Shown here piece by piece: positions 4,297-52,726 of a stretch of 64,000 bases of DNA. The first letter of the stretch is position 1, and every line of letters starts with the position of its first letter. The DNA is from Felis catus (Eukaryota), in NCBI RefSeq assembly GCF_018350175.1, contig NC_058386.1, positions 126,480,001-126,544,000 of the forward strand, given 5' to 3'. The notes under the pieces were generated by a model. It ran no database searches. It saw only the letters and a program-made list of their open reading frames with translations, and had not been told where the DNA came from. The translations under genes were made by a program, and so were the position numbers.

Positions 4297-5461
4297 GTGA
4301 GGGCAGCAGACGAAGGCACGGGTGCCGTGGGCGTGGTGGTGGGCGCAGCAGGTGGTGGCCAGTGTGTGCCAGGTGGACCTCGTGGTGTCAGTGGCCCCAG
4401 AGTCCCTGGTGGTTCGGGTGGTGCCTGTGACCCTGGCCATCCCAGCAACCCCGGAGGCCTGAGCGATCCGGAAAGAACCAGCATTGTGGGAGAGGTAGGT
4501 GCCGCCGCTCTGGTGGCGCTCTCCAAATGGAGCGGGCGCCACCCTACACACCAGGTCCTGGTGGATGATGCCGCGCCTGGCGCTAGAGGTCCTGGAAACC
4601 GACTGCTTCAGTTGTATCCTATTCAAGGAGTCCCAGCGGGCTGGACGGCAGGGGGATGGGCTGGAGGTGGTCTGGCGCGCGGCGGGGTGGGGTGTGGGGG
4701 GGAGACTTGGGGAAGTGGAGTTGAAAGGGGAGCAGGAGGGAGCTCCGGGCACCTGGAGGGTATCGGCTAGGGTTTGGCCCGTGCTGACAGAGGATGGGGA
4801 GTGGGGTGGACCGCCTGATGGGGACTGAAGCGGTAGGGACAATGCTATCCGGGGTGGCCTGGCTGTATAGGGTGGGAGGTTGTGGACAGCCTGAGGGTCA
4901 GCCTGGGGTGGGGAAGGCAGGCCTCACTGAAGAGGAGGCCTGAGGCACAGGCAAAATTTAGTACTGTGGATGGTGCCTTAACCCAGTCTCCACCAGCACC
5001 CTCACTATACCTTTCCCCTCGGCCATGGATGCGGAGATTGCCCACAGGTTCCTGACTCCAAACGAGGAGCTCCAGGAGCCAGTTCGGGAGGAGCTCCATG
5101 TGAACGGCAGCATCCTGACTGTGTTAGTTCTAGAACGGTCCAGGGAGAGGGTGGTGGCAGGTGACCAGGGACAAGGTCAATTCCGGAGGAGCTGTAACGG
5201 AGACAAGGGAAACAGGAAAGGAGTGAGTCGAAGGAAGGAGTGTGGTGCTCTAGGATCGTTGCTGTGTGAAGGGGCGGAGCGGGGAATGTGCCCCACCGGC
5301 CCTCTAACTTGACTTATTTTTTCCTACCTCGTAGCCGCTTGACTGCCGATGACCCTGGCCAGCTCCAAATGTCCATCACCTCCTGTCTTGGCCAGCTTTC
5401 CCTAGTGATACGGGCCATGCAGATCATCATGCCCCCCTTTTTCACAAAGCCGCAGCAGTGA
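4297..5461 (+). CDS. CTAG1/CTAG2(NY-ESO-1/LAGE-1)-family gene A (Pcc1 domain); no in-frame ATG, GTG at homologous start; functional status uncertain
   Basis: Exons 4297-4613, 4997-5122, 5335-5461 splice to an open 189-aa frame. Exon 1 is Gly-rich and ends ARGPGNRLLQ(F). Exon 2 reads TLTIPFPSAMDAEIAHRFL...EELHVNGSILT. Exon 3 reads VRLTADDPGQLQMSITSCLGQLSLVIRAMQ. This resembles NY-ESO-1 ARGPESRLLEF...KEFTVSGNILTIRLTAADHRQLQLSISSCL. Both introns are phase 2. Confidence 0.7.
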
Positions 5462-6367
5462 AAAGGTGGCTGGACCCAACTCTGTGTCCCCCCCACATGA
5501 CAGTGATTCCTGCAGCAGCTGCCGTTTTCTTACTGAGGCCGCATCTTTTGCCTATACTGGCCCTTGGGTGCTTCAGATCCACATTTTTTTTTTTTTTTTT
5601 TTTTTTTTTTGGTGATCAAATGGTAACTGCTACTATTCTGTGTCTGGGTTTATTTTTAAAGCATCTACGCCTTCTCCTATTCTCGCCTTTGTTCTCAGGT
5701 AGGGGGAGAGATTCTGACATTCAGATACTCAAGTACTAGAAGGCAATTGAAGAAGACAAGTTAGGCGACGGGAGAAAAAAATTATGTCCTGTTATTCAGG
5801 ACATTAACTACTGTCAACATGTTAGAACTTTTGTTTTAGTTTTATACTAGCATGTACATAGTCATGTATAATACCTGCAGAGTAGGACTTTGTGGCTTCT
5901 CGGCCTTGATTCAGATCTGTGCAGAAGAGCGCTGGGACAGCTGGCTAGGTCGGCCCCACTGCCCATTCTATACTCCCGTGTCATCAGAGGCCTCATTCCC
6001 TGAGGTTCCGAACCCACAATTCTCAGAGCTCCTTGTGGTTGGCTCTCACTTGTATCATCCTTCCCCAAAGTGTTTTTCCAGTTTATTACGCTGCTGCTTG
6101 CTTCCCTGAAGTCCTGACAAGGGTCCTGGAGGAAAACAAAAAGGGGAAGAGGTCTCCCTGAGGTGGGGAGGGGACATGAAGTACATTACCCTTTGCCTTC
6201 CCCTCCAAGACTCTCTTATTTAGCACAACAGTGGGGCCACGTACAAGGCACCCGAGTGGCTGAGGAGGGGAATGGGCGACGCCCCGGTGCACGAGGTGAG
6301 TCTCTAAATCGGAGAGAGGAGGAACAGAGCCTTGCCTGAGGGAGAATTAGCAGTGTCAGCAGAGAGA

Positions 6368-6800
6368 GACTGAGCAGTGGAGAACGCCGTGACTCTATAG
6401 TTACGAATCTGTACCTGAGCGTCTCCAAATAGGTCCTCAGGACAAGTGAGGAAAGTAAAGGCACAGCTGCCTTGTCCTGGAGGCAGGTGTCACAGCAAGA
6501 AGGTGGCCAGTGTCTAGAGCGGCCTGTGGCTGGTGGAAGCATTTCAATGAGCAGTGTCACCAAAGAGCGCCTCAGCCTGAGCCTCGGACTGTCTCTGTCT
6601 GCCCTGTTCTTTGTCACTGCCTACGGGGCAGGCAGCTCTCATCTCCGGGCACGGGCAGGAGGAACCTGCAGCCGGAAAACAAGGATCTTTCAACACGTGC
6701 ACGTCTATAAACCCCGCCCTCGGCCGCCTCTCCAGCAGCTGCTGCCTCTCCAGCGGCTGCTCCCTCACCAATCGTCGCCACGCGCTGTGACGCGTGACCC
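6368..6800 (-). promoter_or_regulatory. Unidentified promoter-like element S (CCAAT, GC box, TATA-like); copies at 36840-37272 and 39790-40135
   Basis: On the mirror copy: ATTGG 36868-36872, GGGCGGGG 36921-36928 and TTTATA 36929-36934 in a CpG-rich setting. The third copy is truncated by L1. Confidence 0.4.
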
Positions 6801-7504
6801 CACTGCACCCACGCAAACCAGTCCCACCTCAGCTCCACCCCCTCCCCACACCCCTAGCCCCTCCCCAGACCTCGTGGGAGGCCGCCAGGCACCACGGCCT
6901 GTTGTCCAGAGGGCCCTGCCTCTTCCTTGGGCTCAGTGTCCCCAGCACGTGGGGCTCCACGACCTCGCAGCGGTTCGTGGAGGGAGATGGGCCACAGCCC
7001 AGACGGACACGGCCCCGCACCCCGTCCCCTTCCCCGGTACCGGTGGACACACCAAAGCGGCCTTTGGAGGGGGCGACTGAGCACAGGTGCGGATCAGATC
7101 GGCGGTCTGGGAAGGTCACGAAGGGGCTCCCGTCGGGGGGCAAGCCTGCCAGTAGCAGGCAAGGAGGAAAGGGATGGCGACTGGAGCTAAAGTAGTTAGT
7201 GGCCACGGAGAACAGGGATGCGGTCGCATAGGGAAAAACCACAGTGCAAAAGGGAAATCACTAAAATCCCAACTTAGGAAGCTACTGTATATGTGCACGG
7301 AAATCCTGCCACGGTAGCCTGAAGTGTAAACACCTCGTATGTCTGTGTGGTGGGATTGAGGGTGGTCCCCACTTCTTTTGTGTGCATTTCTCCCCCAAAA
7401 GGTTCAGAATGACTTTACATGACCTTTGGTGTTTTCAATTCTTTGACATCCTTGTGTGCGTGATCTCTACGCCCCACGTGGTGCGGCACTCACGACCCAG
7501 TGAG

Positions 7505-8610
7505 TGCTTCCACAAGTCAGGCTTGAGAGAGCAGATGATGCCATCCAGGGCGCCGGGCAGCAGCACTCCCCGCACCAACAGCACGACGAGGACCACGCAG
7601 GGGAAGGTAGCCGTGAAGTACACGATCTGGGGCGGGGGAGGGACGGGGGGGGTAACCTGCTCAGAAGGGGCCCTGCGGCCCCGCCTCCCCACTTAGGGGT
7701 CCCCAGCCTCAGCAGGGGGGCAGGCGGGCCACACTCCCCCCACTGTGGTACGGTCCACTCCGAGGTCAAGCGGGAGGCCAGCCTGCAGCCCCCCCTTCTA
7801 CTCCTCAGAGCCTGGGCTCCTCCCGAAGGAAGCGGGGTGCTCAGCTGGCCATCGGCTGCCCCCGCAAGGACAGGTCAGCTGTAGAGAGGGAGGGTGGAGG
7901 CAGGACCTTCCCCAGGTGGGGAGCAGGACATCGGCCTGGAGGCAGGTCCCATGCTTCCTGTGGTTCTCTGCACAGAGGCAGGGTCCTGGGCAGGACGGAG
8001 TGGACTGGGCCGGCCAGAGACAGAGGCGACAGCGAGGTGACCGCGAAGACCTCTGCCTCCGTCCCACCCTCAGCAGAGCAGGACAGGTAGGCAAAGGAGG
8101 GCCACGGGCCGGGTCCCCCCAGGCTGGCCGCAAAGCAGAGAGTGAGGAAGTAGTGAGTGAGGAAGAGAGGGAAACTGGGGCAGGGATGCCCGACACAGGC
8201 AAGTTCAGCTGGGGGTCGCCTGGGCCTGTCCCCTCAGGACGGAAGTCGGCTGGGCTGGAGTGTGGAGGTTGCGGAGCACTACCCAGGCACGCGTGGGAAA
8301 TCCACCGGGCTGGGTTCAAGGACCTGCCCCCGCCTCAGGCCCTGGCCCGGTCACCTCGCATGGCAGGGTCCACCTGCCCCCCCCTAGCGGAGACACCCCT
8401 TCTCCCCACCGGCCATGCTGCCCCCACCCCTGCCATCATCACCCACCCCGACCCGCCGGCCTCCAGCTGTACCTTTCCTGTTGACTTGACCCCCTTGCAG
8501 ACACAGAAGTAGGCCAGCACCCAGCAGGCCTGCAGACACAGGGTCACCTCCCAGTTGAGGGCCCCTGGCACGTCCAGCCCCCCCACCCCGAGAGCCGAAA
8601 GACTTTGTTC
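7505..8610 (-). pseudogene. SLC6A8: SLC6A8 (creatine transporter) fragment, exon 4 - intron 4 - most of exon 5
   Basis: Exon 4 at 8473-8610 ([36 protein letters not shown]) is 138 nt vs the canonical 133, so it is frameshifted. Exon 5 starts at 7626 ([31 protein letters not shown]) and breaks off before its donor. Confidence 0.93.
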
Positions 8611-9164
8611 CTGGGGGGAGGGGGGGACAGCCCGTCAGGGCTGCCGCAGCAGAGGGCAAAGCGACCGGGGAGCTGTCGCCGGGGCGGTGCTCCCCCGAGC
8701 CGCTGCCCTCAAGTCCAGGTGGGCCCCCCTGGGCCCCCGGCCCAAGCCCACAGCCATTGCAGTGGGAGGCAGGAGCCCGGGAGCCCCCGGCCGGAGGCCG
8801 GTCGCGCCCTCGGCGGTGTACCCTCCCCCAGGCTGGCAGGCACTAGGGGACTGACGGCGCCCGGGACCGACAAATGGTGAGGGAGCCAGGCCCATCCCTT
8901 CCAGCTCCCCTAGGGGCCGTGCGGGGTGTGCTCCCTGAGGACAGGCAGGGCCTGGGAGTGGCCCCTGCTCGGCATCCCGCGTAGGCCCCCCCCCCCGGCC
9001 CCCGGGTCGCAGGGCCCCCGGGACACGCAGACCCGAGCCGTACGGGGAGCCCACAGACAGGGACAGGCACGGTGCTGCCCAGAAGCGCCTGAGCGCGGCC
9101 CACGCCTCGATGCCCGGGACCGGGCGGGCGGCGGTCAGCTGGCTGCTGGCAAGTGCGCCCGGCT

Positions 9165-9398
9165 GGCGCCTGCGCAGACACAGGCTTGGGGGGAGGGGCG
9201 GGCCGGGCCGGAAACAGTCACGTGCCAGTGGCCTCACCAGAATGCTCTCGGGGACGTAGGAGCCCGACAGTGACGTCACGCGTCGGGGGGCGCAGCGTCC
9301 GGAACCAGCCTCCATCTCCTCGGGGTCAGCGTCGACCGGATCCAGGCTCTGCCGGCTCGGTGGCAACCAGCTCCGCGGGGTCTGTCTGCGCAGGCGCC
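9165..9398. promoter_or_regulatory. CpG-island promoter region of gene B (NRF1-like x2, GC box, E-box, full CRE); mirror 34238-34471
   Basis: GGCGCCTGCGCA 9165-9176, GTCACGTG 9217-9224, TGACGTCA 9271-9278, TGCGCAGGCGCC 9387-9398. Confidence 0.6.
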
Positions 9399-9524
9399 CT
9401 GGCCATCCCCGACAGCCTTGCGCGCCGAGGGGCCGGGCTTCGCGAGGCCTGCCAGGGGTCTCAGCGGTCGGCCGACAGTGGGCGCAGCGTAGCGGTGGGC
9501 TCTGAGGAGGCCGGTGCGGCGGCC

Positions 9525-10664
9525 ACGAGGGCCCCGGACGACGAAGCGGCCTCTCCGGCCCCGGACGACGGCGCGGAGGAAGTGGCGGTCACGCAGGCCC
9601 CTGACGATGACGGCGCGGACGGCGCGGCGGTCACGCGGGCTCCCGAGGGTGGCGCGGAGGACGCGGGGGCAGGCCCACAGGCCTCCGACGGAGGCACGGA
9701 CGGCCACGACCCCCAGCTTAGCCCCCGAGGTCCCGGTTGCCAGGGCAACTGCAGCCGCCACGATGGCGAGGGTGGCCCTGGCAGCAAGGGAGCAGTGGTC
9801 GAGGGGGCCTGCGCCCCTCCCCTGGCCGAACGGGCCCCGAGGGCCCTGGCCCCCGGTGGAGACGCAGCGCCGGCGGCGGCGGCGGTGACCTCCTCAGGAC
9901 TGCTGGAGTTGTATCCTTTCCGTGGAGCCTGTCTGGGCAGGGGCCGTGGCGGGGTGGCTGGGGAGCAGGGCGGCAGCCCGGGGACGGGACGGACGGGGGC
10001 GGGGGTGGGCAGCCTGGCGGGCCCCCAGGGTGGGGGAAGCGGCTCAGGGTGGGCAGAGGTGGCGGGAGGGAGCGCGAGTGTCCCGGGGGTAGAGGCGGGC
10101 CTCTGAGTGGTCAGGAGGCTTCAGGCCATGGGAACTCCAGGAGCCCGTTGTGCCTTAACCGGGTGCCTCCCAGCAGGCTCACTGTGTCTTTCCGGTCGCC
10201 CCTGGAGGCAGAGATGGCCCGCAGGGCCCTGACTACACACGTCCAACGCCACCGAGGGTTGGCTCAGAAGGAGCTTTGCGTGAGGGGCAGCGCCCTGGCC
10301 GTGTGAGTCCTCCAACAAGAGTATGCGCGGGACGGGTGGGCGGTGGCGGCGGGTGCCGTGGTCGCATCTCTGCCTTCCAGTGCCGTCGTGGAGGCCCCGA
10401 CGCACGCTGTTAGGTGGAAGGCGGGGGGGTGGGGGGTTGTGTGGGGGAAGGGGCTGGTGCCCTGCACCTCCACAGCAGGTCTCCCCTTTAACCGGATTTC
10501 CCTCTTCCCTCACTTCTAGGAGATGGACTACTGAAGACCCCATCTGCTTCCGAGTTTCCGTCAACTCCTTCTTGGACCGGCTTCCCCTGGTGATACGAAA
10601 CATTCGCGCCTTGGGGTCCCGGCCTCCGCGGCGCCTAGGTCCGGGAAAGGGGGCCGAGGCCTAA
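9525..10664 (+). CDS. LAGE3: LAGE3-like Pcc1-domain gene B; ACG at homologous start, no exon-1 ATG; functional status uncertain
   Basis: Exons 9525-9910, 10174-10302, 10520-10664 give an open 219-aa frame. Exons 2-3 read FRLTVSFRSPLEAEMARRAL...QKELCVRGSALAVRWTTEDPICFRVSVNSFLDRLPLVIRNI, resembling LAGE3 FTLSVPFPTPLEAEIAHGSL...VRWKAEDCRLLRISVINFLDQLSLVVRTM. It is convergent with a PLXNA3 3' end, as native LAGE3 is. Confidence 0.72.
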
Positions 10665-11955
10665 CCTGGTAGCCCTCACTGGGCAAGGCACGGGGCGTTG
10701 ACACTTGGCGTCCTCGCCACTTTACTATCGGGGGTCTAACGTTCTGCAGGTCCGGGCCTCGGTGGCTCTTGGCCCACTTCAGTTCCTTCCCTGCGCCCGG
10801 AGGGACGGGCGCTTACGTGTTTGTCACTGCACAACATGAAACTGAGCTACTCTTTTGTGTCCGAGTTTCTTCTCAGTTCCTGCGCCTCCACATTTTCTTA
10901 CCTTTGTTCTGGTGTTGGAAGGGAGGTTCTGGGAATCGTAGTCCAGCAGCCCAAGCTTATCGAAGACGACTCAGGGAGAGGAAAATCAGGTCCTATATTC
11001 AGCGGTAAATACTGCTGACGTTTTGGAATACGTTCCTAGTTGTATTTACCCGTTGAATGGATAGCAACGTATAACGTATCCATTTTCCAGTTTAGCGTTA
11101 ACTTTTCTCCGGATCCTTTTTGTTTCGTTTTGTTTTGTTTTTGTTTTTCCCCGTTGAACGTACTAGCTTTCCCACTCCCTAAAACCCTTCAAAAACTGTT
11201 ATCCAGGAGACACACAAATGTATTATTACATAATGTTGAGCAGTCGGGTCGTTCTCAGCTTTGCCCCTATTATGGGTCGTGTGAGTCAATGGGATTCTTG
11301 AACAGAAGTCTTTGCGCGAACAGTTACTTCCTTCAGATCGTTTCCAAGAGGTAGAATTCCCGCGTTCTATAGCTTCTCGGCACACAAGTGCTCTCCAGAA
11401 AAGGCGCCCCGCCGGCAGAAGTCTGGTCTCCCCGCATCACCAACCAGTAGGGTGGCTTCCTACCGAAGTAGAAGACTCCTTTTGTACCAGGGAAATAAGC
11501 ACGGAAACACTAGAATAGGAATTTTGGGGCTTACTGGCCTTGTTTCCGATGAGCAAGGGGGTGGTGCCACAAGTGGCTACGGGTTTGGGGGCGGGGTGGG
11601 GGGTGGTTAGCTCCCTCTGAGTAGCTTGTGTCTTGGAACCTCGCTAAACAGGAGTGCTAGCCTCACGAGGGTTCCCTCGGAGTTTCTACATGCATGGTCG
11701 TGATCTCTGCAAGCAAACACGGTTTTGGTTCCTTCCTTTCCGGCCTTGCCGGGGCTACGGGGGCGGGGGGAGGGAACAGGCTGACACTGGACAGATGGGA
11801 AGCAAGAGCAGGAAGGCACATGGCAGAGAACCAAATCCTGGATCCAGCCACGCCTGAAGACAGAACTATCCGCCCCCCGCCCCCGCCACAATCGTTCAGT
11901 TACACACATCCAGAAACTCTCCCTTTGGTTAAGCCAACATGAATCCTTTTTTTCT

Positions 11956-11995
<40 letters not shown>

Positions 11996-12019
11996 TCCCT
12001 TTCTCTTTTGTTTGAATGC

Positions 12020-12224
12020 TTTTATTTAGTGTTTGAGAGCAAGACAGAGACAGCGTGAGCGGGGAAGGGGCAGAGAGACAGAGAGGGAGACACAGAATCT
12101 GAGGCAGACTGCAGGCTCTGAGCTGTCGGCACAGAGCTCGACGCAGGGCTCAAACCCACGAACTGTGAGATCGTGACCTGAGCCGAAGTCAGACCCTCAA
12201 CCGACTGAGCCACCCAGGCACCCC
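12020..12224 (-). mobile_element. CanSINE (feliform type); mirror 31436-31640
   Basis: Contains gagatcgtgacctgagccgaagtcagaccctcaaccgactgagccacccaggcacc. Confidence 0.9.
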
Positions 12225-14481
12225 CGTCGTGAATACTTTTTTTTGCTTTTCTTTTTGTCTGTCTTCACTTGTAATAGAAAAGTCTTGTCCTTTATTGACT
12301 CGAGGAACCGTAGGTTTTCTTGTCACTTCACCTGAGAACGTGGCTCTCCCTTCTTTTAACGGAGAAACTGGGCTCTTTAAGTTTACAAAGGCATTGGCTC
12401 CTAGCTGGTAGGCCTTCAAGCCGTATGGTGGTAGAGTCTTCTGTGGGTAAGAGTCCAGAGAGGGAGGGGAGGGACTGCAAGGGGCAGCTGGAGGAAAGGG
12501 ACAAAGAGAAGGGGCACTGGGACCCACCCTTTCCGGATAGGGCTCCCAAGACTGGCCCGGAATTGTGGGGCCAGATCGTCAAGAGACCGGAACTTAGTGT
12601 GAGCCTCCCTCCCTCTCCCAGCAAAGCCCAGAGTTAGGCCACCGCCCTGGCCCCACAGACGGACTGCTGAAGGCGCCGGGCGGCCTTAACACGTCAGTCA
12701 GGTCACAAAACAAGTCGATTCCAACGCGTCCCCGGGCTCCCCTCCCAGAGACGAGCCAGAGCCCTGCCCCGCGGCCCGCCGCGTCAGATGTGATCCGGCC
12801 CGCATCTTCCACGGCCTCCTTCCCTCCCCTCTCCACCTTGCTCACTCTCGGATCCAGCCACACTGGCCTCCTCCCTTCTCTGAAACACACCAGGCCCAGG
12901 CCTGCCTCAGGACCCTTGCACTGCCTCTTCCCTGCCTGGACCTCTCGTCCCCCGGGGTTCCATCTGGCCCACTCAAATAGCATTCCTGGCCGCTCTCCTT
13001 AAGGTTGCGTCCCACGCTCTCCCCACCTGCATTACTTTCACAGGTGTCGGGGGGTAAGAAGCAGGTGGGCCCGTCAGCATGGAGGTGCACGTGCGGCAGT
13101 AAAGCGTCGTGGGACACGAAGGAGCTTGGGTGCTGTCGATGACCCTAGGGAGTCTTGAACGGAGCGGGACGGGATGCAGCTTACGTCTTATCAGGTTCCC
13201 GGTGCCTGCTGCGCTGGGAAGGGGACGAGGGCAGGCAGGACAGAAGTGGGGAGACTGGCACGCAGGCGAGAGACCCCCAGGCTGCGGCCAGTGGAGGTGG
13301 GGAGAAGGGAACGGGTTCCGACCGGATCTTGACGGGAGAGCCACCGGGGTTTGCTGGCACGGATCGGACGTGGCCCTGGACCTCCTCAGATGCGCGGGAC
13401 CCGTGCAACGGGTCACCCTTCCTCCCACAAAGGGAGCCCAGCTCCTCCAGAGTCCAACAGCCTCCCCACCTGCCTCCCTGCTCGCCGACCACCCACCTGC
13501 CACACACTGCCACCGTTTTCCCGACGTTTAATTCAGAAACAAGGTTCCAGGAACAACGACAAAGAAGCTCATGCCAAAACAGAGGGGACAGCTGGGTTTC
13601 CGGGACCACGCGCCGGGGCCAGATTCCTCGGAGGGGGAAGAGGGAACAGAGGGGTAAGGCACTGCCGCCTCGGCCACTCGGGGCGGGCGCAGGACAGGGC
13701 AGCGGGGGTGAGGGGTCCGGGCTGAGCGGGCACCACGCCGAGGAAGCTGGGCGCTCGGGCCTGGAGAAGGAGACTTCCAGAGCCCCCAGGCCCACGTGGG
13801 GCCCTGGCACGAACCCGCTCATAGCTCCCCAGGTGCTGGGGACAGGGCGCCCGAGAAAGGTACGGTCCGACCCCCGAGAAGTCCGGAGGGGATGCCGGGA
13901 CCCAGCCGCGGGGAGACCCCTGGGCGCAGCCACAGTCTGGGGACGGCTTCGCCGCATCACCCTGGGCGCCCCCCTCCTCGCCATCAAGTGCTGCTGGTGT
14001 CGGGGGCCCCTGCTCGGACCCGGCGGGGCCGGCCACGGCCAGGGGCAGGTGCCAGAGGCGAGGCCGAGGCTGACCGTGCCACCAGGGAGCCAGGACGACC
14101 CAAGGACAGAAGGGGCGTGAGGTTGTCCACATCCCAGAGAAGGGGCACGTGGTGACAGACGGACACGGTGAGGTGCAGATAAATTAAATAAATAGGTGGT
14201 TGGGGGTATAAACAGGAAGAGGGGGCAGGGGCTGGCACGACCCGGGGGCACGAGGGTGGGAGGGCGGGGATATTGCTGCTGCCAGGTCAGGACCCTTGGT
14301 CCCGTCACCATCGCCCCCACGCAGGGCCCAAAGAAAGGCACTAATGAAGGGGGCCCGGGTGTGCGCAGGGCACGAGAGTCCGGTGACCACCCCATCCCCG
14401 CCCCCGTGCCACCCGATCCAGGGCTCGGCCCCGAGGTCATCTCAGGCCTGGGACGCCCCCTCCTCACCGGTTCCGCCACCC

Positions 14482-14577
14482 TTAGCTGTTGCCGGACAAG
14501 AGGCTGATGGTCTGTTCCAGGTTTTGCCCCAACTTAGGCTTCCGACAGGAGGCGTCTCGGTCCAGAGCGGTGAGGAC
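14482..14577 (-). pseudogene. PLXNA3: PLXNA3 terminal coding exon, orphan duplicate (3'UTR-derived sequence continues to lower coordinates)
   Basis: Preceded by a pyrimidine-rich acceptor. VLTALDRDASCRKPKLGQNLEQTISLLSGNS* vs recalled human PLXNA3 C-terminus ILTALDRDASCRKHKLRQKLEQIISLVSSDS* (23/31 identical). No upstream PLXNA3 exon recognised. Confidence 0.85.
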
Positions 14578-14869
14578 CTGGGGGAGGAGGGCCCCCCCGG
14601 AGCCGGGCTGGCGAGGAGGGGCCGCTCCCTCCCTTGCCAAGCCGTCCTCCCCTGCCTGAGCTCTTTTGTCCCTCCTGCGTCCACGCACCCCGCTCTCTGC
14701 GGGTCCCCGGCACGTGGGAAGGGCTGCAGCCCCCCACCTCTGCACACGCTGCGACTTGGCCACCCCGAAGCCACCGCCTTCTCTGCTCGGCGGCCACAGT
14801 GCGGCCCTTCCCGGGAGTGGTTTGGACCCGCTGTCCCCAAACGCCCCGTCCCCTCCTGGCCCACACCCC

Positions 14870-16330
14870 ATCTCCCCATCCCCTCCTGAACCCCAAACCC
14901 GCACATGATCTCCCCGTCCCCTACTGACCCGGAATCTGGACCCAACCTCCAGGTCCCCCCCTGACCCCACCCCACACCCAATGTCGCTATCCCCTCCGGA
15001 CCCCATCTGCACCCCGCACCCGATCACCTTGTCCCATCCTGACCCCCACCCGACACCCAAATTTCCCAGCCCCTCCTGACCCCACCTTGCACCCAACATC
15101 CACGTACCCTGCTGACCCCCACCCCGCACCCCAAATCCCCATCCACTCCCGATCCGGAATCGGCACCCAACCTCCAGATCCCACCTGACCCCCACCCTCC
15201 ACCCAATCTCGCCATCCCCTCCTGACTCCCACTGACACCCCGCACCCGATCACCTGGTCCCTTCCTTAACCCCACCCGACACCCGAATTTCCCGGTCCGT
15301 CCTGACCCCACCCCGCACCCAAGCCCCATCCCCTCCTGAACCCCAACCCCACACCTGATCTCCCCATCTGCTACTGACCTGGAATCTGCACCCAACCTCT
15401 GCGTCCCCTCCTGACCCCCACTCCTGCCAAGCACCCGATCACTTCGTTCTCTCTTGTCCCCCACCGCCACCCTGCACCTGATTTCCCCGTCCCCTCCTGA
15501 CTCTTACCCTGAACCCGATCTCCCTCTCACCCCCTGACCCCCCCGCCACACCCCACCTCCCCATCCAATCCTGATCCCCACCCCTACCTGGCACCCGATC
15601 TCCATGACTCCTCACACCCACCCCTCCACTCACCTTGCTGGACACTCGTGATTCCCACTCCACACCTGATATTCCTGTGTCCTCCTGACCCCCACCCTAC
15701 CCCCCATCCAACCTCCGCCATCCTCTTGACCCCCACTGCCCACTCAACCTCCACGCCCCACCTGGCCCCCACCCCACACCCCAAATCCCCATCCACTCCC
15801 GATCCGGAATCTGCACCCAACCTCCAGTTCCCACCTGACCCCCACTCTGCACCCAACCTCCCATCCCCTCCTGACCCTCATCCCATACCCGACCTCCCTG
15901 TCCCGTCCTGACCCCTACTCCTCCCCTGACCTCCTCATCCACTCCTGACCCCCAACCCTACCGAGCACCCGATCTCCCTGACTCCTCCTGACCCCCACCC
16001 CCCACCCAACTTCCCGGTCCCTTCCCGACTGCCACCCCGCACCTGACATTCCTGTGTCCTCCTGACACACACCCCCACCCCGCACCCGAGTTCCTTATCC
16101 CCTCCAGACCTCCAGCCCGCACCCCTTGCCAAACCTTCCCGTCTCCTCCTGACCCCCACCCTGCACCCCGTACCCCATCTCCTCATCGCCTCCTGACTCC
16201 ACCTCGCACCTGGTCTCCCCGTCCCCTCCGGAACCACACCTCACATCCCATCTCCCTGCCCCCTCCCAACTCCCACCCTGCGCCTGACTTCCTCGACCCC
16301 TCCTGACCCTCACCCCACACCCGACCCTGT
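14870..16330. repeat. C-rich (G-rich on minus) degenerate minisatellite
   Basis: Dozens of variant units built on CCTCCTGACCCCCACCCCGCACCC(GATC/AA) and CCGGAATCTGCACCCAACCTCCAG modules. Confidence 0.92.
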
Positions 16331-17027: not shown

Positions 17028-19718
17028 ATATCAAAGTTTTGTTATAATTGGAAAATACCTTTCCTTGCCATTTCTTCATTTTATCTGTGCTCCTGGTCTT
17101 TTGGTATAGAGTGGCTTAAAATTTTTTTGTTTATGTGATCCATTGTTTCAGTATAATTTGCGGTTTGCATTTCCTATGAAAGGCCCTCCTCAGTATAAAA
17201 TTACAAAAATATTCACTGAGAACATCTTCTAGTACTTTAAAACTTTAACATCCTGGGAGGTAATTTTCGTGAGAAAGAACATTGGTATGTAAGTTTGTTT
17301 TCTTTCCAAAAGGTTTTAGTCAAGGTGTCCCAAACCACTTAGCGAATAATCTGTATTTCTCCCTTGAGGTGAAATGTCATCTTCAGCAAATTCTAAACCC
17401 CCCTTCAGTTTAATCTTGCACTTTTGTTGTTCCAGCTAATTTAGGTTGGGTGGTACAGGATGGCCTGTCTAGGGCAATGATCTGAAGGACATGGTCTGGA
17501 ACATTGGGAGTGAAGGGAGGAAAGAGAGAGGAGGGGAGAGGAAAAGGAGGAGGAGGAGGAGGAGGAGGAGGAGGGGGAGAGTGAGTAGAAGAGAAGGGAG
17601 GGAGGAAGAGAGGAAAAAGGACAGAGGAGACATAGAGAAACTCTCCCAAGCAGAGGAAATTGGTTTCTTCTGGAATGCCAGGAGGCAAGCTCACAGAAGT
17701 GTCAGTCAGCCGGGTGACATTTCAGAGGGATTTGTGGTTCTCCAAGTCTGCCCAACAATGTCAGATATCCTCGCGACAACTGCGAGGAAGCCACTCTTTG
17801 GTGCTCTTGCATTAAGGACAGAGACGCGGGGAGGTTGGAGACCCAGCTACCATTGCAATGGCAATGTAACAACAACTCTCAGGACCTTTTCTGAGGTGGG
17901 TTTTCTTGACGTCTCCACACTTTGGCTGCCTGCGCTAAGGGACCCCACCAGCAAGGTCAGAGAGAGGCCGGAAGGTTCCTTCTGGGTCTGGACGCAATCA
18001 TGTCAAGATTGGAGTAGTGGTTCCCAGGCTCTGGGTTACCCGAGACCATCAGACGTGACCGTGTACCACGTGGTCACCTTTAAAAATGGTTTCCCGGCAG
18101 CGTGTGCCCAAACTCTACCTAGAGTTTGCCTTCGGAGAACACATGGTCCAGCTTGCGCACTGGTGACAGTTGGGTTCTCTGCTTCCCTGTCCTGCGATGT
18201 GAATGGGAGTCTGTTGGCCTCCCCCAGCTTCACCCAGTAAGTCATTGCGGATCACCCAAATCACCCCGCATTTCCTGAGTCTGTTGCTTGAAACCCACTG
18301 ACCGTTCTCATCTGTATGAGTTGGAGTACTTTGGTTCTAAGAGACAAAACGCAGCTCTAAGTGGGAAGGGAAGTGCTGATTGGTGAGATGCCCACGTATA
18401 CACAGAGGGTCCTGCTGGAGTGTGCAGCACACCACTGATCAGCACAAGTGTGTGAGCAAACCATGTGAAGCCAGAGAAAGAGCCATCTTAAAGGAGGAAA
18501 GGTAATTGTGCCGACCCCTCAAGCAGGACAGAGACTGGTGGCTATCCCCACCGGCAGGGAGGACAGACCGCGTAATTCTGGAGGCCTTGGGCAGGGCACT
18601 CAGAAGGGTCTTGCCTCAGTAGTGTAGCGGGAAAAACGAATCCTCCACTGAGCTGTTCTGGTCCCACGCAGCAAATCTTCAAAGCCAAGACTCAAAAGGA
18701 TCAATCTTTTCCCACTCACTTACCAGCATCCCTGAGCAAAGCTCATGACTATGTTTAGGAATACAAAGACATCCAAGGACACCTGGGTGGCTCAGTTGGT
18801 TGAGCGTCTGACTCTCGATTTTGGCTCAGGTCATGGCTCCAGGGTCATGGGTTCGAGCCCGGAGTCGGGTTCTGTGCTGAGCGTGGAGCCTGCTCAAGAT
18901 TCTCTCTCTCACCCTCTGCCCCTCTCCCCCGCTCTCTCTGTCTCCAAAATAAAAAGAGAAAATTCTAACCTTTAAAACAGGAATACAAAGCCATCCAGAA
19001 CCCAAGGAAAAATCACACTGTCTGGCATCCAGCCCAACATTACCAGGTATGCAGAGAAGCAGGAGGATCCAACCCGTGATGAGAAGACAAATCAAGCAAT
19101 AACAGGCATCCAGATTGGCAAGAAAGAAGAAAACCCCCCCTCATTCTCAGACATGATTACGTATATAGAAAATCTAGTGGCGTCTACAAAAGAGCTGTCA
19201 AACTAATCAGGGACCTTAGCAAGTTTTCAGGATTCAGCATATTTTAGAGAGAGCTGCTTTAAGAACATGTACACATTAAAAATAAGAGGCTTAGGGGCAC
19301 CTGGCTGGCTCAGTCCATAGAACATGTGACTTTTGATCTCGGGGTCATGAGTTAGAGCCCCACATTGGCCATACAGCTTATTAAAAAAGAATAAAGTAAA
19401 AGGCTTCATTCTCCCTGTTGAAAATATGGGAAGAGATGGTCCCCTCCCCTTCCTTAAAGCATTTACTTTACACGACTTGTAAGTTCTTTCTTTGTTTCTT
19501 TGAAAACAGGTAGTATTTTTAAAGGGTAGAGGCACCTGGGTGGCTCAGTGCTTGAGTATCCGACTTGAGCTCAGGTCATGATCTCATGGCTCATGACTTT
19601 GAGCCCTGCATCGGGCTCCGTGCTGTCAGCAGAAAGCACTCTTCAGATCCTATGTCTCCCTTTCTCTCTGCCCCCCCCACTCCTTCTCTGAATAAATAAA
19701 TAAATAAATGAATAAATA

Positions 19719-19763
<45 letters not shown>

Positions 19764-20592
19764 TTAAGGAACAAAAGGCTAAAAGAGCCCCTTGCCATCT
19801 TTATAGCCCAGGAATGTGTTCTTCAAGGACCTGGGAAACATCTCTTTGGAATGTAAACATCAAGCAAGATTGTGTCCCGATCTTCAGTTTCTGTGGGAGG
19901 GTAGAAGCCTAACTTCAGTAGGCACCTTGCTCCAAGTTGCAAAACTAGCTCCTGTCATAAAGATATGAAAAAGCTTATTTTTTCCTTGGATAAAGCCGAT
20001 TAATTGTATTAGTCTGCTCAAGCTGCTATAGCAAAGTACCTCACACTGGGTGGCTTACACAGCAGAAATTTATTTTCTCACAGTTCTGGATGCTAGAAGT
20101 CCATGATCAAGGTGCCAGCAAATTCAGCTTCTGGTGAGAATTTGCTTCCTTGCTTGTAGAGGTCCACCTTCTCCTCTGTCCTCACATGGCCTCTCCTCAG
20201 TGCAGGTGAGGAGAGAGCGGGGGAGTAGGGGCGGGGAGGGAGGGAGAGGAAGAGGGGGGGTGCTCTCTGGTGTCTCTCTTATAAGGACACCACTCTTATT
20301 GGACCAGAGCCCCATTCTTATGACCTCATTTAAACTTACTTCCTCAAAGGTCCCATCTCCGAATACAGCCACACTGGGGTTTAGGGCTTCAGCATATTAA
20401 TGTGGGGGAGGGAACACAAACGCACCGTCTGAAACAGCCACGACCTAATACACACGGCCACCCCAGTTCCCAGGGAAATTCAGGATGGACTATGTGCGGG
20501 GCCTGGTGGCGTCACGTCCTCTTACTTGAGGTCTACTTATGGTGGATGTTGAGAACACGTGATGAGCTCTACCCGCTTACCTATACAAAAGG
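17028..20592. repeat. Inverted repeat 1, right arm
   Basis: Reverse complement of 1-3549. Differences seen are mainly microsatellite and homopolymer lengths. Confidence 0.97.
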
Positions 20593-34111: not shown

Positions 34112-35027
34112 GGCCGCCGCACCGGCCTCCTCAGAGCCCACCGCTACGCTGCGCCCACTGTCGGCCGACCGCTGAGACCCCTGGCAGGCCTCGCGAAGCC
34201 CGGCCCCTCGGCGCGCAAGGCTGTCGGGGATGGCCAGGGCGCCTGCGCAGACAGACCCCGCGGAGCTGGTTCCCACCGAGCCGGCAGAGCCTGGATCCGG
34301 TCGACGCTGACCCCGAGGAGATGGAGGCTGGTTCCGGACGCTGCGCCCCCCGACGCGTGACGTCACTGTCGGGCTCCTACGTCCCCGAGAGCATTCTGGT
34401 GAGGCCACTGGCACGTGACTGTTTCCGGCCCGGCCCGCCCCTCCCCCCAAGCCTGTGTCTGCGCAGGCGCCAGCCGGGCGCACTTGCCAGCAGCCAGCTG
34501 ACCGCCGCCCGCCCGGTCCCGGGCATCGAGGCGTGGGCCGCGCTCAGGCGCTTCTGGGCAGCACCGTGCCTGTCCCTGTCTGTGGGCTCCCCGTACGGCT
34601 CGGGTCTGCGTGTCCCGGGGGCCCTGCGACCCGGGGGCCGGGGGGGGGGGGGCCTACGCGGGATGCCGAGCAGGGGCCACTCCCAGGCCCTGCCTGTCCT
34701 CAGGGAGCACACCCCGCACGGCCCCTAGGGGAGCTGGAAGGGATGGGCCTGGCTCCCTCACCATTTGTCGGTCCCGGGCGCCGTCAGTCCCCTAGTGCCT
34801 GCCAGCCTGGGGGAGGGTACACCGCCGAGGGCGCGACCGGCCTCCGGCCGGGGGCTCCCGGGCTCCTGCCTCCCACTGCAATGGCTGTGGGCTTGGGCCG
34901 GGGGCCCAGGGGGGCCCACCTGGACTTGAGGGCAGCGGCTCGGGGGAGCACCGCCCCGGCGACAGCTCCCCGGTCGCTTTGCCCTCTGCTGCGGCAGCCC
35001 TGACGGGCTGTCCCCCCCTCCCCCCAG

Positions 35028-38177: not shown

Positions 38178-39334
38178 TCACTGCTGCGGCTTTGTGAAAA
38201 AGGGGGGCATGATGATCTGCATGGCCCGTATCACTAGGGAAAGCTGGCCAAGACAGGAGGTGATGGACATTTGGAGCTGGCCAGGGTCATCGGCAGTCAA
38301 GCGGCTACGAGGTAGGAAAAAATAAGTCAAGTTAGAGGGCCGGTGGGGCACATTCCCCGCTCCGCCCCTTCACACAGCAACGATCCTAGAGCACCACACT
38401 CCTTCCTTCGACTCACTCCTTTCCTGTTTCCCTTGTCTCCGTTACAGCTCCTCCGGAATTGACCTTGTCCCTGGTCACCTGCCACCACCCTCTCCCTGGA
38501 CCGTTCTAGAACTAACACAGTCAGGATGCTGCCGTTCACATGGAGCTCCTCCCGAACTGGCTCCTGGAGCTCCTCGTTTGGAGTCAGGAACCTGTGGGCA
38601 ATCTCCGCATCCATGGCCGAGGGGAAAGGTATAGTGAGGGTGCTGGTGGAGACTGGGTTAAGGCACCATCCACAGTACTAATTTTGCCTGTGCCTCAGGC
38701 CTCCTCTTCAGTGAGGCCTGCCTTCCCCACCCCAGGCTGACCCTCAGGCTGTCCACAACCTCCCACCCTATACAGCCAGGCCACCCCGGATAGCATTGTC
38801 CCTACCGCTTCAGTCCCATCAGGCGGTCCACCCCACTCCCCATCCTCTGTCAGCACGGGCCAAACCCTAGCCGATACCCTCCAGGTGCCCGGAGCTCCCT
38901 CCTGCTCCCCTTTCAACTCCACTTCCCCAAGTCTCCCCCCCACACCCCACCCCGCCGCGCGCCAGACCACCTCCAGCCCATCCCCCTGCCGTCCAGCCCG
39001 CTGGGACTCCTTGAATAGGATACAACTGAAGCAGTCGGTTACCAGGACCTCTAGCGCCAGGCGCGGCATCTCCACCAGGACCTGGTGTGTAGGGTGCCCG
39101 CTCCATTTGGAGAGCGCCACCAGAGGCGGCACCTACCTCTCCCACAATGCTGGTTCTTTCCGGATCGCTCAGGCCTCCGGGGTTGCTGGGATGGCCAGGG
39201 TCACAGGCACCACCCGAACCACCAGGGACTCTGGGGCCACTGACACCACGAGGTCCACCTGGCACACACTGGCCACCACCTGCTGCGCCCACCACCACGC
39301 CCACGGCACCCGTGCCTTCGTCTGCTGCCCTCAC
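38178..39334 (-). CDS. CTAG-family gene A' (mirror of A); GTG at homologous start plus an in-frame internal ATG at 39106
   Basis: Exons 39024-39334, 38517-38642, 38178-38304. Gives 187 aa from GTG, or 111 aa from ATG 39106 (MERAPYTPGPGGDAAPGARGPGNRLLQF...). Confidence 0.75.
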
Positions 39335-40135
39335 GGGGCCTCCACCAGCCACCTGAGACCCAACTTTGAATCCGCCCACCCTCTCAAGGCATCACTGAAG
39401 GACAAAGCGCTCTCTCACAATGCTTCACCCCTTTACTCCACAATGCAATTCCGGATGCCCAGAGCAACTGTCCACACGGACCACTGGTAATGCCTCCTGA
39501 CCTGTGATTGGTTCCCACCAAGCAGTCCCTTCTGTAGCCAATCAGTTCTCACCTATGAAGCTCCACCCCTTAGAGTGCCACGACACCCTAGGGCGTCTGC
39601 CCAAATGGGCACCCGCGTCGATGCGTCTGCCTGAACCAGCCGTGCCACGAGCCTTCGACGGCCCGCCAGCTGCGATATCCAGGAAGCCTCTGCCTGACAC
39701 TACTCCCCACACGGTGGTGCGGCTCATGGTCCCCACTGTCCATGCCCAAACAGACTGCCATGGCCCAACTCCTAAAGCCTCTGAGCACGTGACTGAGCTG
39801 TGTAGAACTCCGTGACTCTATAGTCACGAATCTGTACCTGAGCGTCTCCGAATAGGTCCTCAGGACAAGTGAGGAAAGTAAAGGCACAGCTGCCTTGTCC
39901 TGGAGGCAGGTGTCACAGCAAGAAGGTGGCCAGTGTCTAGAGCGGCCTGTGGCTGGTGGAAGCATTTCAATGAGCAGTGTCACCAAAGAGCGCCTCAGCC
40001 TGAGCCTCGGACTGTCTCTGTCTGCCCTGTTCTTTGTCACTGTCTACGGGGCAGGCAGCTCTCATCTCCGGGCACGGGCAGGAGGAACCTGCAGCCGGAA
40101 AACAAGGATCTTTCAACACATGCGTGTCTATAAAC

Positions 40136-46145: not shown

Positions 46146-47079
46146 ATGGTTCCGGGCAGCTGGGGAATGAGACCCGAGTGTCGCTGTTCCTTCTGGAAGG
46201 GCTGGCCGACGCAGAGGAGTTGAGGCCCTTGCTCTTTGTGATCTTTCTGCTGGTCCACAGCGTGGCTGGGCATTGCCAGCCTTACTGTGATGGACTCCCG
46301 ACTCCACACTCCCATGTACGACTTCTTAGTCAACCTCTCACTGCTGGACACTGCCTATATCTCCAGCACGGGGCCTCAGGTGCTGGAACACCTGCTGGCA
46401 GCAGTGCGGACCGTGCCCTATCGTGCTTGTCTTCCCCAGATCTTCTTTCTCCACTTCCTGGCTCCCTGGGAGTGCTTCCTGCTCACAGCCATGGCCTGTG
46501 ACCGCTATGCAGCCATCGGCCGGCCACCGCACCACCTAGTCCTCTTGGGCCGTCGGACGGACCCGGGCAGGAATGGCTTCCACCTCCCGCCTGCTTGCCT
46601 TGGCCGATGCGTTCGCCCACACCGTCCTTGCAGCTCCACTGAGGTTCTGCGGGCCTCGCCTCATCACCCACTTCTCCTGTGGCCTCCCTCCACTGACCAG
46701 ACTCTCTTGCTCAAGCACGTGGGCCAGCGAGCTTGCCCTGTTCGTCTTCAGTTTCGTGGTGGCTCTTGCACCCCGTGCCCCGGTTGCGATCTCCTGTGTA
46801 CGTGTTGTGGCTGCGATTCTCAGGATTCACTCCGCTGACGGCCGAAGAAAAGCCTTTTCCACCTGTGGTGCTCACACCACCGTGGTCTGCATTTTCTACA
46901 TCGCTCCAGTCCTCTGCTACATCCTCCCCAGCTCTGCGTGCTCTGGCTTGCGGGACCGGGCGCTCCCTGTGCTGTACGTGGTCCTCACCCCCATGCTCAA
47001 CCCCGTCATCTACAGCATGCGAAACAAGGAGGTGAAGAGGGCTTTGTTCAAGGCCCTCGGGAAAGAAAGTGCCTCCTAG
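46146..47079 (+). pseudogene. Olfactory receptor pseudogene (possibly related to human Xq28 OR3B1P by synteny)
   Basis: Motifs GNETRVSLFLLEGL, LHTPMY, LLTAMACDRYAAI, KAFSTCGAH and [16 protein letters not shown] are split across three or more frames. Confidence 0.93.
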
Positions 47080-47096
47080 GCACTGGTCACATCAAA

Positions 47097-47678
47097 TCAA
47101 CGAGGAGTGTCCCCGGCTCAGGAGTTTCTCACATCCGAATGTGCTCCCAGTGCTAGGTGCCTGTCAGTCTCCACCTGCTCCACACCCCACCCTCGTCGCA
47201 CACTGGATGCCATATGGATCCCTCCCTGTACAATGTATTACACGAAGGCACCAATTTTGCTGTGGACCAGAGCCAGGCTGTGACGTTTGCATTGGACATG
47301 GCAAGGGGCATGGCCCTCGTACACACTCTAGAGCCCCTCATCCCACGACACGCGCTCAGCAGCCGTAGTGTAATGATTGATGAGGACATGACTGCCCGAA
47401 CCAGCACGGCCGACGTCAGGTTCTCCTTCCAATGCCCTGGGCGCAGGTATGCACCTGCCTGGNNNNNNNNNNNNNNNNNNNNNNNNNNNNNNNNNNNNNN
47501 NNNNNNNNNNNNNNNNNNNNNNNNNNNNNNNNNNNNNNNNNNNNNNNNNNNNNNNNNNNNNNNNNNNNNNNNNNNNNNNNNNNNNNNNNNNNNNATTGGA
47601 ATGAAGGTGGCACTGGAAGGCCTTCGGCCTACCATCCCACCAGGCATTTCCCCCCATGTGTGTAAGCTCATGAAGATC
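47097..47678 (+). pseudogene. ILK: ILK processed pseudogene fragment (pseudokinase domain)
   Basis: Intronless [30 protein letters not shown]...[26 protein letters not shown]...[28 protein letters not shown], with a 4-nt frameshift near 47220 and a gap inside. Confidence 0.95.
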
Positions 47679-50078: not shown

Positions 50079-50115
<37 letters not shown>

Positions 50116-51085: not shown

Positions 51086-51265
51086 CAAGAAAAAGTTAAA
51101 AACCCTCCAGTACAGAATAGAACTATAAACAAGAATTCAGTGAAGCAATGAGGAAGGAAAGTATTTTCAATTACTTTGGCCAAGATTTGGTATCTTTGTA
51201 TATAAAGAGCATTCACCAATCAATAAGTAAAATATGACTATTCCAATTGAAAAATTAATCAACGA

Positions 51266-51418
51266 GGGCCGCCTGGGTGGCTCAGTCAGGTAAGCACCTG
51301 AGTCGGTTTCGGCTCAGGTCATGATCTCACGGTTGGTGGGTTCAAGCACTGCGTCGGGCTCTGCACTCACAGCGCAGGAACTGCTTGGGTTCTCTCTCTC
51401 TCTCTGCCTTCTCCCCTT
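51266..51418 (+). mobile_element. CanSINE, 3'-truncated, abutting the 3' end of gene D
   Basis: Starts gggccgcctgggtggctcagtcagg...ggctcaggtcatgatctcac and has no A tail. Confidence 0.85.
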
Positions 51419-51611
51419 GCTCTGACACTGTAGCTGAAAATACACTCAGATGCGGAAAAATAGTTTTATTTTCTGCTGTAAGAACGCCCCTCCTCCAGCA
51501 ATGGGGAAAAACAAGGCCCAAAGTCCAATACGAACAATTAGACCCCCGTAATAAAGCGGCAACCAGCATCGGAATGGACGCCCTAGGGAAGGAAGGGACG
51601 CTAGGTTACAA

Positions 51612-52726
51612 TTAGCCCCTTTTGCCTGGCTCCGGCAATGTGAAAAACGGGGGCACGAAGCGCTGCATGGTCCAAACCAACAGGGAAAGCTGGTCAAGAC
51701 AGGAGGCGATGGAAACCTGGAGTTGGCCAGGGTCTTCGGCAGTCAGTCGGCTAAAAGTGAGGGAAAAAGAAAATCCAAATGAAATGTCATCACTCTTGCC
51801 CCTATCTCTCTGCCCCCCCTCAGGTGGCCGCAGGCTCAGGGTGCCACACCTACCTCTTTGGACCTAACCTTTGGTGTCTCCAATTCACTATTAGAACGGC
51901 CCTCAGGAGATAGGCCCTAGCGACCTGACACCACCCCCCACGAGGGACCCGTTTGGAACTAACATAATTAGGACGTTGCCGAGTACCGTGAACTCCTTCC
52001 GAACTGCCCCGACCTGGGGCTGGCCCTGTGTTGCCAGACACTGGTGGGCCACCTGTGCCTCCGTGGGTGACGGGAAAGGCATGGTGACGTAGCTGGTAGC
52101 CATTCGGTTAAGGCATCATCGAAAACCGATCGCGTCGGTGCCTCAGGCGTCCTGACCACTCCGAGGCCTGCTTTCCCCACGGCCACTCTCCCCCCTCTCC
52201 ATCCTCTCCGGTCCGCTCCCCTCCTTGCTGGTCCATCAGGCCGCCTCTCCCCGCCACCCCTCCCGGCCACCCCTGGCCCATCCGCCCCCCGGGCCGGTCC
52301 CTCCGGTGCCCCGGTCCCCCCCTCCCCTCCTTGCCCTGGACCCCCAGGCTGAACCCCCTCCCCTCCGCTCCCCGCCCCGTCGCCTCCTCTAGGCCCATCG
52401 CCCCGGCCACCCGCCACTCGGCCAAGAGGATACAACTGCAGCGGCTGGCTCCCCGGCCCTCCGGCTGTGGGCCCGCTGTGCCCACGGGGTCCCGGCAAAG
52501 GGTGTCCGCCAAGCCCTGGCACGGCAGCTGCGCCCGGGACGGGAGCACATGGCGCCTGCGCGACCCGCGGGGCCGCACCGGCCGCGGCACACTCCTCTCC
52601 CTCACCACCTCCACCGCCGGGGCCCTCGTGGCCTCCGGGGCCATCTGGGACACCGGGGTCTCCCGGGCCACGCTGACCCTCGGGACCGCCGGCCCCACCG
52701 CCTGCGCCTCGATCTGTGGCCTCCAT
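51612..52726 (-). CDS. CTAG1B: CTAG1 (NY-ESO-1)-like gene D, intact, 186 aa
   Basis: Strong Kozak ggaaccATGG at 52726. Exons 52434-52726, 51964-52092, 51612-51750. Reads MEATDRGAGG...PGDPGVPDGPGG; FYVTMPFPSPTEAQVAHQCL...RKEFTVLGNVLIIRLTAEDPGQLQVSIASCLDQLSLLVWTMQRFVP, the closest match here to NY-ESO-1. AATAAA lies at 51465-51470 (minus). Confidence 0.93.

Follow-up and report, generated by a model that had tools for sequence, protein, structure and literature searches.

LAGE3, CTAG1 and CTAG2 make up a described X-linked family, in which CTAG1 and CTAG2 are Pcc1-family paralogues expressed in testis and tumours (PMC3418287, PMC9889334). Six loci of this family lie between positions 4297 and 52726 of a 64,000-nucleotide stretch of the domestic cat X chromosome (contig NC_058386.1, 126,480,001 to 126,544,000), referred to here as the window, and they fall into four very different types, A, B, C and D. 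The question raised by this locus is whether the four types arose within cats, as an initial annotation of the sequence proposed, or were inherited from much older mammals. The analysis presented here makes it likely that the window belongs to a palindromic, multi-copy LAGE3/CTAG array on the X that holds four old lineages, in which only the near-identical copies are recent.

A shared three-exon gene plan

Exon models built from the DNA place the loci, in the sequence as assembled, in the order A1, B1, D, B2, A2 and C. On the forward strand, A1 (4297-5461; exons 4297-4613, 4997-5122 and 5335-5461) represents a CTAG1-like sister lineage, with 4297 as the first codon of its open frame, and B1 (9525-10664; exons 9525-9910, 10174-10302 and 10520-10664) represents a LAGE3-like lineage. 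The remaining four loci are on the reverse strand. D, the most diverged type, spans 23745-24844 (exons 24844-24576, 24261-24133 and 23883-23745) and encodes 178 amino acids from an ATG. B2 (32972-34111; exons 34111-33726, 33462-33334 and 33116-32972) is the mirror copy of B1 and identical to it in coding sequence, while A2 (38178-39334; exons 39334-39024, 38642-38517 and 38304-38178) is the mirror copy of A1. C spans 51612-52726 (exons 52726-52434, 52092-51964 and 51750-51612), begins with an ATG at 52726, encodes 186 amino acids and is placed in the NY-ESO-1/CTAG1 orthologue group.

All six loci follow one plan of three coding exons with the stop codon in the third. Exon 1 has a length of 2 modulo 3 at every locus and exon 2 measures 126 or 129 nt, which puts both introns in phase 2. 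Glycine, alanine and proline together account for 49-65% of exon 1. The initial annotation had described exactly this arrangement, six copies of four paralogues with a Gly/Ala-rich first exon and two phase-2 introns, and the models reproduce it in full. Its further statement that the splice signals are invariant holds for intron 1. There the donor TT/GTATCC (the slash marks the splice site) is common to all six loci, and six of the seven occurrences of this 8-mer in the window are at the loci; the 9-mer GCCTTAACC, which is likely the branch site, stands about 20 nt ahead of the exon-2 acceptor, and its six occurrences in the window are exactly those at the six loci. The second donors, by contrast, vary between GTTAGT, GTGAGT and GTAAGT, so invariance is confined to the intron-1 signals. 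Exon 2 starts after CAG, and in B1 the exon-2 acceptor is a tandem CAG/CAG.

Under this common plan the proteins differ strongly. The types share 15-19 of 44 exon-2 residues with one another, in agreement with the 14 of 43 first reported for C and D, and 30-43 of about 89 residues over the whole domain.

Family membership and predicted fold

A six-frame Pfam Pcc1 scan of the whole genome returned window matches at about 5.0, 10.5, 33.0, 38.5 and 51.7-52.0 kb, and a subsequent local phmmer search with exon peptides added B exon 2, A exon 3 and the sixth locus at 23.7-24.4 kb. Against the Pcc1 profile (PF09341, cut-off 20.9 bits), exons 2 and 3 score 35.3 and 16.9 bits in A, 16.9 and 22.3 in B, and 25.1 and 22.7 in C. 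A, B and C are thus matched in both exons and D in exon 3 only (16.2 bits), exon 2 of D alone giving no Pfam Pcc1 match. For the family as a whole the match to PF09341 is significant: full-length orthologues reach 58.7 bits (the C-type protein P0001) and 74.5 bits (P0003, from a rhino, in the wider B clade), and D-type proteins bear PF09341 in precomputed annotation. A profile of the family matches human LAGE3 (6gwj_B) at E=1.5e-36.

The fold was tested for D alone, using a domain identical to that of the window gene. AlphaFold2 predicts the strand-helix-strand-strand-helix order of the Pcc1 fold (E2-9, H13-30, E34-41, E44-51, H54-77) with a pLDDT of 80.5. The best Foldseek match of this model is human LAGE3 from the OSGEP/LAGE3/GON7 crystal (6gwj_B; TM 0.79/0.86, rmsd 1.6 A), followed by yeast, archaeal and plant Pcc1, and the top 21 matches are all Pcc1, LAGE3 or Pcc2.

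Annotated relatives provide further support, with RefSeq models in leopard cat, domestic cat, Geoffroy's cat and cheetah matching window genes. C is 96% identical to the leopard cat "cancer/testis antigen 1-like" protein P0001, its junctions agree exactly with P0001 and P0002, and every piece of a domestic cat RefSeq isoform matches it at 96-100%. The Geoffroy's cat protein P0015 reproduces the B junctions and shows that the CAG/CAG acceptor is used at its first AG. The D model is supported by proteins of cheetah, bobcat and leopard, and its Pcc1 domain is identical to that of cheetah P0185. At the place of A in Geoffroy's cat, NCBI annotates a 111-amino-acid Pcc1 gene that corresponds to the A model read from an internal methionine. 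Splice-exact mapping shows that badger D, dog B, meerkat B and bear LAGE3 share the three-exon, phase-2 plan, their exon 1 lengths being 2 modulo 3 and their exon 2 measuring 129 nt. The predicted cat genes carry the RefSeq names "cancer/testis antigen 1-like", "cancer/testis antigen 2-like" and "LAGE3-like" and, mistakenly, "collagen alpha-1(I) chain-like".

Taken at the level of sequence, these results confirm that the six loci are genuine three-exon genes of the LAGE3/NY-ESO-1 Pcc1-domain family, as the initial annotation had recognized. LAGE3 proper is found on the X as well, some 136 kb upstream of the window. The feature is ordinary in kind, a known family whose members are mostly annotated already; a literature search found no study of the LAGE3/CTAG family in carnivores.

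Four lineages older than cats

The age of the types was examined with a profile built from the exons and their first matches. Searched against 1.84 billion representatives, it retrieved 613 relatives, and names were obtained for 30 of these. In a maximum-likelihood tree of 143 domains and 89 columns, the four cat types each group with non-felid relatives. Type A belongs to an eight-row clade (100/95) with armadillo, horse and deer. Type B joins Geoffroy's cat, hyena and meerkat (100/99) and then dog, within a wider group that holds rhinos, sloth and kangaroo rat. Type D pairs with badger (100/90) inside a 17-row clade (100/90) containing peccary, ground squirrels, three bats and a loris. Type C falls in a 33-row clade (99/80) with orangutan CTAG1, camel, warthog and fruit bat, and A also lies inside this clade. 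Enforcing a single felid clade costs 189 units of log-likelihood and is rejected by the approximately unbiased (AU) test (p=0.00024).

Evidence from individual species points the same way. Named D-type proteins come from ferret, fox, dog, seal, walrus and pig, and the dog carries both B (P0019) and D (P0178). The A-type protein of deer matches cat A over its full length (51% identity, 179 bits, versus 133 bits for C), and the panda has A-like exons 1 and 2, which makes A at least as old as Carnivora.

Each type therefore has orthologues outside the Felidae, and the felid-lineage expansion proposed at first, which would place all four in one clade excluding other mammals, is contradicted. The comparisons indicate that the separation of the lineages predates the divergence of carnivores and probably also the radiation of the placental orders. 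By the same evidence, recent origin is limited to the near-identical copies and the paralogue types themselves are old. The probable picture is of an array in a region equivalent to human Xq28, with A as sister of the CTAG1 group, C in the NY-ESO-1/CTAG1 orthologue group, and B and D as two LAGE3-like lineages. All four keep the LAGE3 gene plan, in which exon 1 encodes a disordered Gly/Ala/Pro-rich tail and exons 2 and 3 the Pcc1 fold, and the near-identical copies would stem from recent duplication together with arm-to-arm homogenisation.

Weak constraint on the coding sequence

The ratio of non-synonymous to synonymous divergence (dN/dS) was obtained from Nei-Gojobori counts on codon alignments. 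Whole-gene comparisons of cat with Geoffroy's cat (A, B, D) or leopard cat (C), with 10-13 changes each, give 0.52-0.59. Across greater distances the B domain gives 0.32-0.55 in cat, dog and meerkat pairs and the D domain 0.50 between cat and badger, equal to the 0.50 of the LAGE3 domain between cat and bear. In the B and D comparisons, dN and dS are each about twice those of LAGE3 or more. The strong divergence between types can therefore be attributed to their age, combined with rates that are roughly doubled at sites of both kinds, and not to a cat-specific adaptive burst.

Within cats the signal is looser. For C and D the domain dN/dS comes close to 1 or exceeds it, though on just five changes each, and the pooled felid domain changes amount to 16 non-synonymous and 6 synonymous. 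Exons 2 and 3 are free of stops and frameshifts in all 21 copies of the genome and in five felid D genes, and the indels in D exon 1 are all multiples of three. The suggestion of diversifying selection made in the initial annotation is not borne out by ratios that equal that of LAGE3 across Carnivora and range from 0.5 to 0.9 within cats. These counts point to weak constraint, possibly near-neutral in cats; gene-wide diversifying selection is unsupported.

Start codons, promoter context and possible decay

Start codons are being lost in several of these genes. For type A, the GTG at 4297 had been proposed as the start, yet the ancestral ATG, which opens M(E/G)SEA... in deer and panda, lies about 10 codons (30 nt) further upstream and reads GTT in cats. 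Both this GTT and a further-upstream stop are present in the window cat and in Geoffroy's cat. A copies other than A1, such as A2, have an internal in-frame ATG that opens a frame of 111 amino acids including the whole Pcc1 domain. In A1, three insertions in exon 1 (+2, +3 and +1), all absent from A2, place a TGA 13 codons past the internal ATG that the Geoffroy's cat annotation uses. In type B, the start position is ACG in all seven copies of the genome, whereas Geoffroy's cat, hyena and dog have ATG there, and B1 contains no in-frame ATG between the stop at 9090 and residue 143. In bobcat D, CTG stands in place of ATG.

An ATG is also found within the B2 intron (33647-33645, reverse strand), where B1 has ACG through a single difference between the arms; the frame of 105 codons that it opens begins in intron 1 and continues into exon 2. 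This ATG would be of consequence only for transcripts that keep the intron or begin within it.

The starts of B, C and D lie within CpG islands, with an observed-to-expected CpG ratio of about 0.9. A full cAMP-response element, TGACGTCA, has three occurrences in the window, where 0.34 would be expected, each of them just ahead of B1, B2 or C: at 9271-9278, 247 bp before the B1 start position; at 34358-34365, the mirror copy ahead of B2; and at 52820-52827, 94 bp before the C ATG.

Weak constraint and the loss of starts in A in cats, in B in this genome and in D in bobcat suggest that some copies may be decaying. A stronger form of this idea is that most copies are passengers, A and B being pseudogenes in this cat and C and D drifting almost neutrally, with frames that persist through recent loss and because GC-rich sequence rarely makes stops. 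Besides the missing starts, this would account for the disruption of the 111-amino-acid frame in A1, for the low CpG ratio of the A 5' region (0.5), and for the 16 non-synonymous against 6 synonymous changes both among felid D genes and in the pooled felid domains. It fits less well with exons 2 and 3 that stay open in every copy, with D exon 1 indels that come in threes, with CpG islands kept at B, C and D, and with a promoter-proximal cAMP-response element kept at B and C. The domain is also somewhat constrained across Carnivora (0.3-0.55), and A2-type copies hold an ATG-initiated frame with the whole domain that NCBI annotates in Geoffroy's cat. Even in A1 the three insertions sum to +6, so that the long frame survives, although chance alone would allow this in one case of three. 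Wholesale decay is possible but doubtful.

Palindrome structure and copy number

Four of the six loci lie in the arms of a palindrome. Its left arm (4070-15523) carries A1 and B1, and its right arm (28116-39559) is an inverted copy carrying B2 and A2. The arms differ by 159 mismatches and 80 gap columns in total. Only 20 of the mismatches fall within 4070-14569 and the other 139 in the last 1 kb, which leaves about 99.8% identity over most of the length. Since nearly all arm differences are concentrated in that last 1 kb, the coding identity of B1 and B2 is no sign of constraint. Outside the arms, 1-3569 is a 99.6% inverted copy of 17028-20592.

Four runs of N interrupt the window, and no exon or intron of any model meets one. 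The gap at 3570-4069 ends 228 bp before A1, that at 26309-26476 lies between D and B2, 1.46 kb beyond the D start, and that at 47463-47594 lies between A2 and C, 4.0 kb beyond the C stop.

The whole assembly contains six A, seven B, four C and four D copies with 99-100% coding identity, the D copies being 99.6-100% identical among themselves. The array thus has the character of an X ampliconic family (at least two copies at 97% or more), with a count that is uncertain because of the gaps and an unplaced contig. This contig presents C-A-B-D-B'-A' as a clean palindrome with the spacings of the window, so part of the copy count may be assembly redundancy. Multi-copy status itself appears real in cats, since the X of the leopard cat has three C genes.

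It is conceivable, if somewhat improbable, that the count of six is partly a product of assembly, with an arm and spacer placed twice or with alternative palindrome orientations joined over gaps. The inverted copy at 1-3569 is what such an error might leave: once the D copy that immediately precedes the window is included, the layout becomes D-segment, arm, inverted D-segment, inverted arm, with gaps at 3570-4069 and 26309-26476. The unplaced contig and the near-identity of the D copies can be read in the same way. Against this, the arms are not identical, given their mismatches, gap columns and the insertions private to A1; three C copies, of which two stand head to head, are present in the trio-style assembly of the leopard cat too; and human CTAG1A and CTAG1B likewise lie in a duplicated X region (bioRxiv 10.1101/228841).

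Two further observations concern the arrangement of the types. A segment of 1.75 kb with 73% GC lies upstream of B and C in the same relative orientation (7506-9234, 34402-36134 and 52890-54633) and is 94% identical between them. B and C coding regions share just about 36% of residues despite this 5' flank, which suggests a transferred or converted segment. In Geoffroy's cat (L033, 6338-12302), A and B are head to head with 3.6 kb between their starts, whereas they are in tandem in both window arms; the A segment was inverted between the cat lineages, or else the assemblies differ here.

Points against an old array, and what remains of other explanations

Several observations weigh against the account of an array of four old lineages. 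The tree that supports it is based on 89 columns, and a felid-only pair of A and C is just borderline rejected (AU p=0.051). A and B in this genome are without a canonical AUG ahead of the full domain, and the 5' end of A is without CpG-island character (0.5 versus about 0.9 for B, C and D). The five felid D genes, in which non-synonymous changes number at least 16 against 6 synonymous ones (a ratio of about 0.9), fit neutral drift too. Copy number rests on a gapped assembly together with an unplaced contig carrying the same genes. Runs labelled as RNA carry 50-84% of the sampled words of a 6.4-kb stretch; because introns and spacers are included, they look like DNA carry-over and provide no evidence of expression.

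The array reading can also be extended to function. In LAGE3, two helices bundle with those at the N-terminus of OSGEP, GON7 binds on the other side, and the N-terminal 60 or so residues are disordered (PMC6722078). By analogy, the cat proteins could contact OSGEP through their two domain helices and, along the strand-1/helix-2 edge, form a pair with GON7 or a different Pcc1-like protein. As germline-restricted products they would in that case substitute for LAGE3 or compete with it. In its fullest form, this proposal holds that ancestral placentals had at least four X-linked Pcc1 paralogues beside LAGE3, that all are kept in the cat palindromic amplicon, that A and B are translated from an internal methionine or a near-cognate ACG, and that the proteins act in spermatogenesis as partners or competitors of OSGEP and GON7 that tune tRNA t6A modification. 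So specific a combination is unlikely.

Least tenable is a felid duplication burst under diversifying selection that produced four new paralogues as germline KEOPS variants or decoys, for which the low exon-2 identity between types, the many near-identical copies in this genome and the high within-cat domain ratios of C and D (on five changes each) could be cited, but which is already contradicted for the origin of the types by closer relatives that in every case lie outside cats rather than within this genome and by the rejection of a single felid clade, and is further opposed by Carnivora-wide ratios equal to that of LAGE3.

An array of four old lineages thus remains the preferred account, and its main value is one of correction: divergence between the types reflects age and not a cat-specific adaptive burst, and start codons are disappearing from several of the genes.

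Neighbouring genes and relatives outside the window

Beside C, a forward-strand ORF at 56301-56912 matches the C-terminal end of SNF (sodium:neurotransmitter symporter) with 68 bits and is probably a duplicated piece of SLC6A8. In the dog, a 169-amino-acid SNF gene fragment stands head to head with a B-type gene (L038, 8914-10002, reverse strand). Because the dog B-type gene adjoins this fragment, the association with SNF predates the split of cat-like and dog-like carnivores. At 46287-47076 (forward strand), two overlapping ORFs in different frames match the initial and the final part of an olfactory receptor (7tm_4, 52.6 and 79.9 bits). They look like a frameshifted olfactory receptor gene about 4.5 kb downstream of C, by the gap at 47463-47594. 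In the leopard cat, each of the three C copies has a 262-amino-acid receptor gene beside it at the corresponding position. Pfam searches of 18 other long ORFs in the window found nothing but pieces of the olfactory receptor and one SNF exon.

Beyond the window (X 126668208-126668713) there is a fifth, younger member. It is an intron-bearing LAGE3-like copy, 74-83% identical to cat LAGE3, that adjoins another C copy in this genome and C in the leopard cat, and is absent beside the window C. Two dead relatives are also present in the genome: an intronless LAGE3-like copy with a stop codon at X 78.38 Mb, and, on a different chromosome (C2:18.67 Mb), an A/C-like copy interrupted by several stops. 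No A, B or C was found in the 10-kb flanks of D in cheetah, bobcat and leopard.

Comparison with known systems

The window types resemble human LAGE3, the KEOPS Pcc1 subunit (PDB 6GWJ chain B), in fold, as judged from the D model, in Pfam family and in chromosome neighbourhood, and they share its disordered N-terminal extension (PMC6722078). They also have the three-exon, phase-2/phase-2 plan of carnivore LAGE3. They differ from cat LAGE3 in being multi-copy and just 35-42% identical to it in the domain. The protein ends differ too: LAGE3 has the tail ...GPPVSR, whereas the window types end in ...PGKGG or ...PGKRG, and A in ...KPQQ.

A second comparison is with human CTAG1A/CTAG1B (NY-ESO-1) and CTAG2 (LAGE-1), since C and, more loosely, A fall in a clade with orangutan CTAG1. 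The cat genes share with them X-linkage, inverted duplication and a Gly-rich N-terminus joined to a Pcc1 domain, and RefSeq applies the name "cancer/testis antigen 1-like" to cat genes. Cats keep B and D as well; no labelled primate CTAG is found there, though a loris protein lies in the D clade. NY-ESO-1 and its relatives are used as tumour-vaccine and T-cell targets, and to our knowledge their function is still unknown. Non-primate mammals, which keep up to four old lineages with a predicted intact Pcc1 fold, may offer comparative material for the question of KEOPS contact and possible animal models of whether NY-ESO-1-type proteins touch KEOPS.

A further parallel is the archaeal Pcc1/Pcc2 pair, in which a Pcc1 paralogue pairs with Pcc1 through the dimer edge and alters KEOPS stoichiometry (PMC9889334). 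The D model also matches 7a67, and the pair gives a precedent for pairing through the dimer edge, although it arose by independent duplication in another domain of life.

A parallel in genome organization is provided by the ampliconic and palindromic cancer-testis families of the mammalian X. Human CTAG1A itself lies within an X ampliconic region (bioRxiv 10.1101/228841). As in those families, the cat array combines inverted arms of about 99.8% identity over most of their length, a testis-type family and a copy number that varies between related species (bioRxiv 10.1101/228841; PMC8327919). The unit here differs in two respects: it holds several old paralogues side by side rather than one amplified gene, and it adds an SLC6A8-like exon and an olfactory-receptor remnant.

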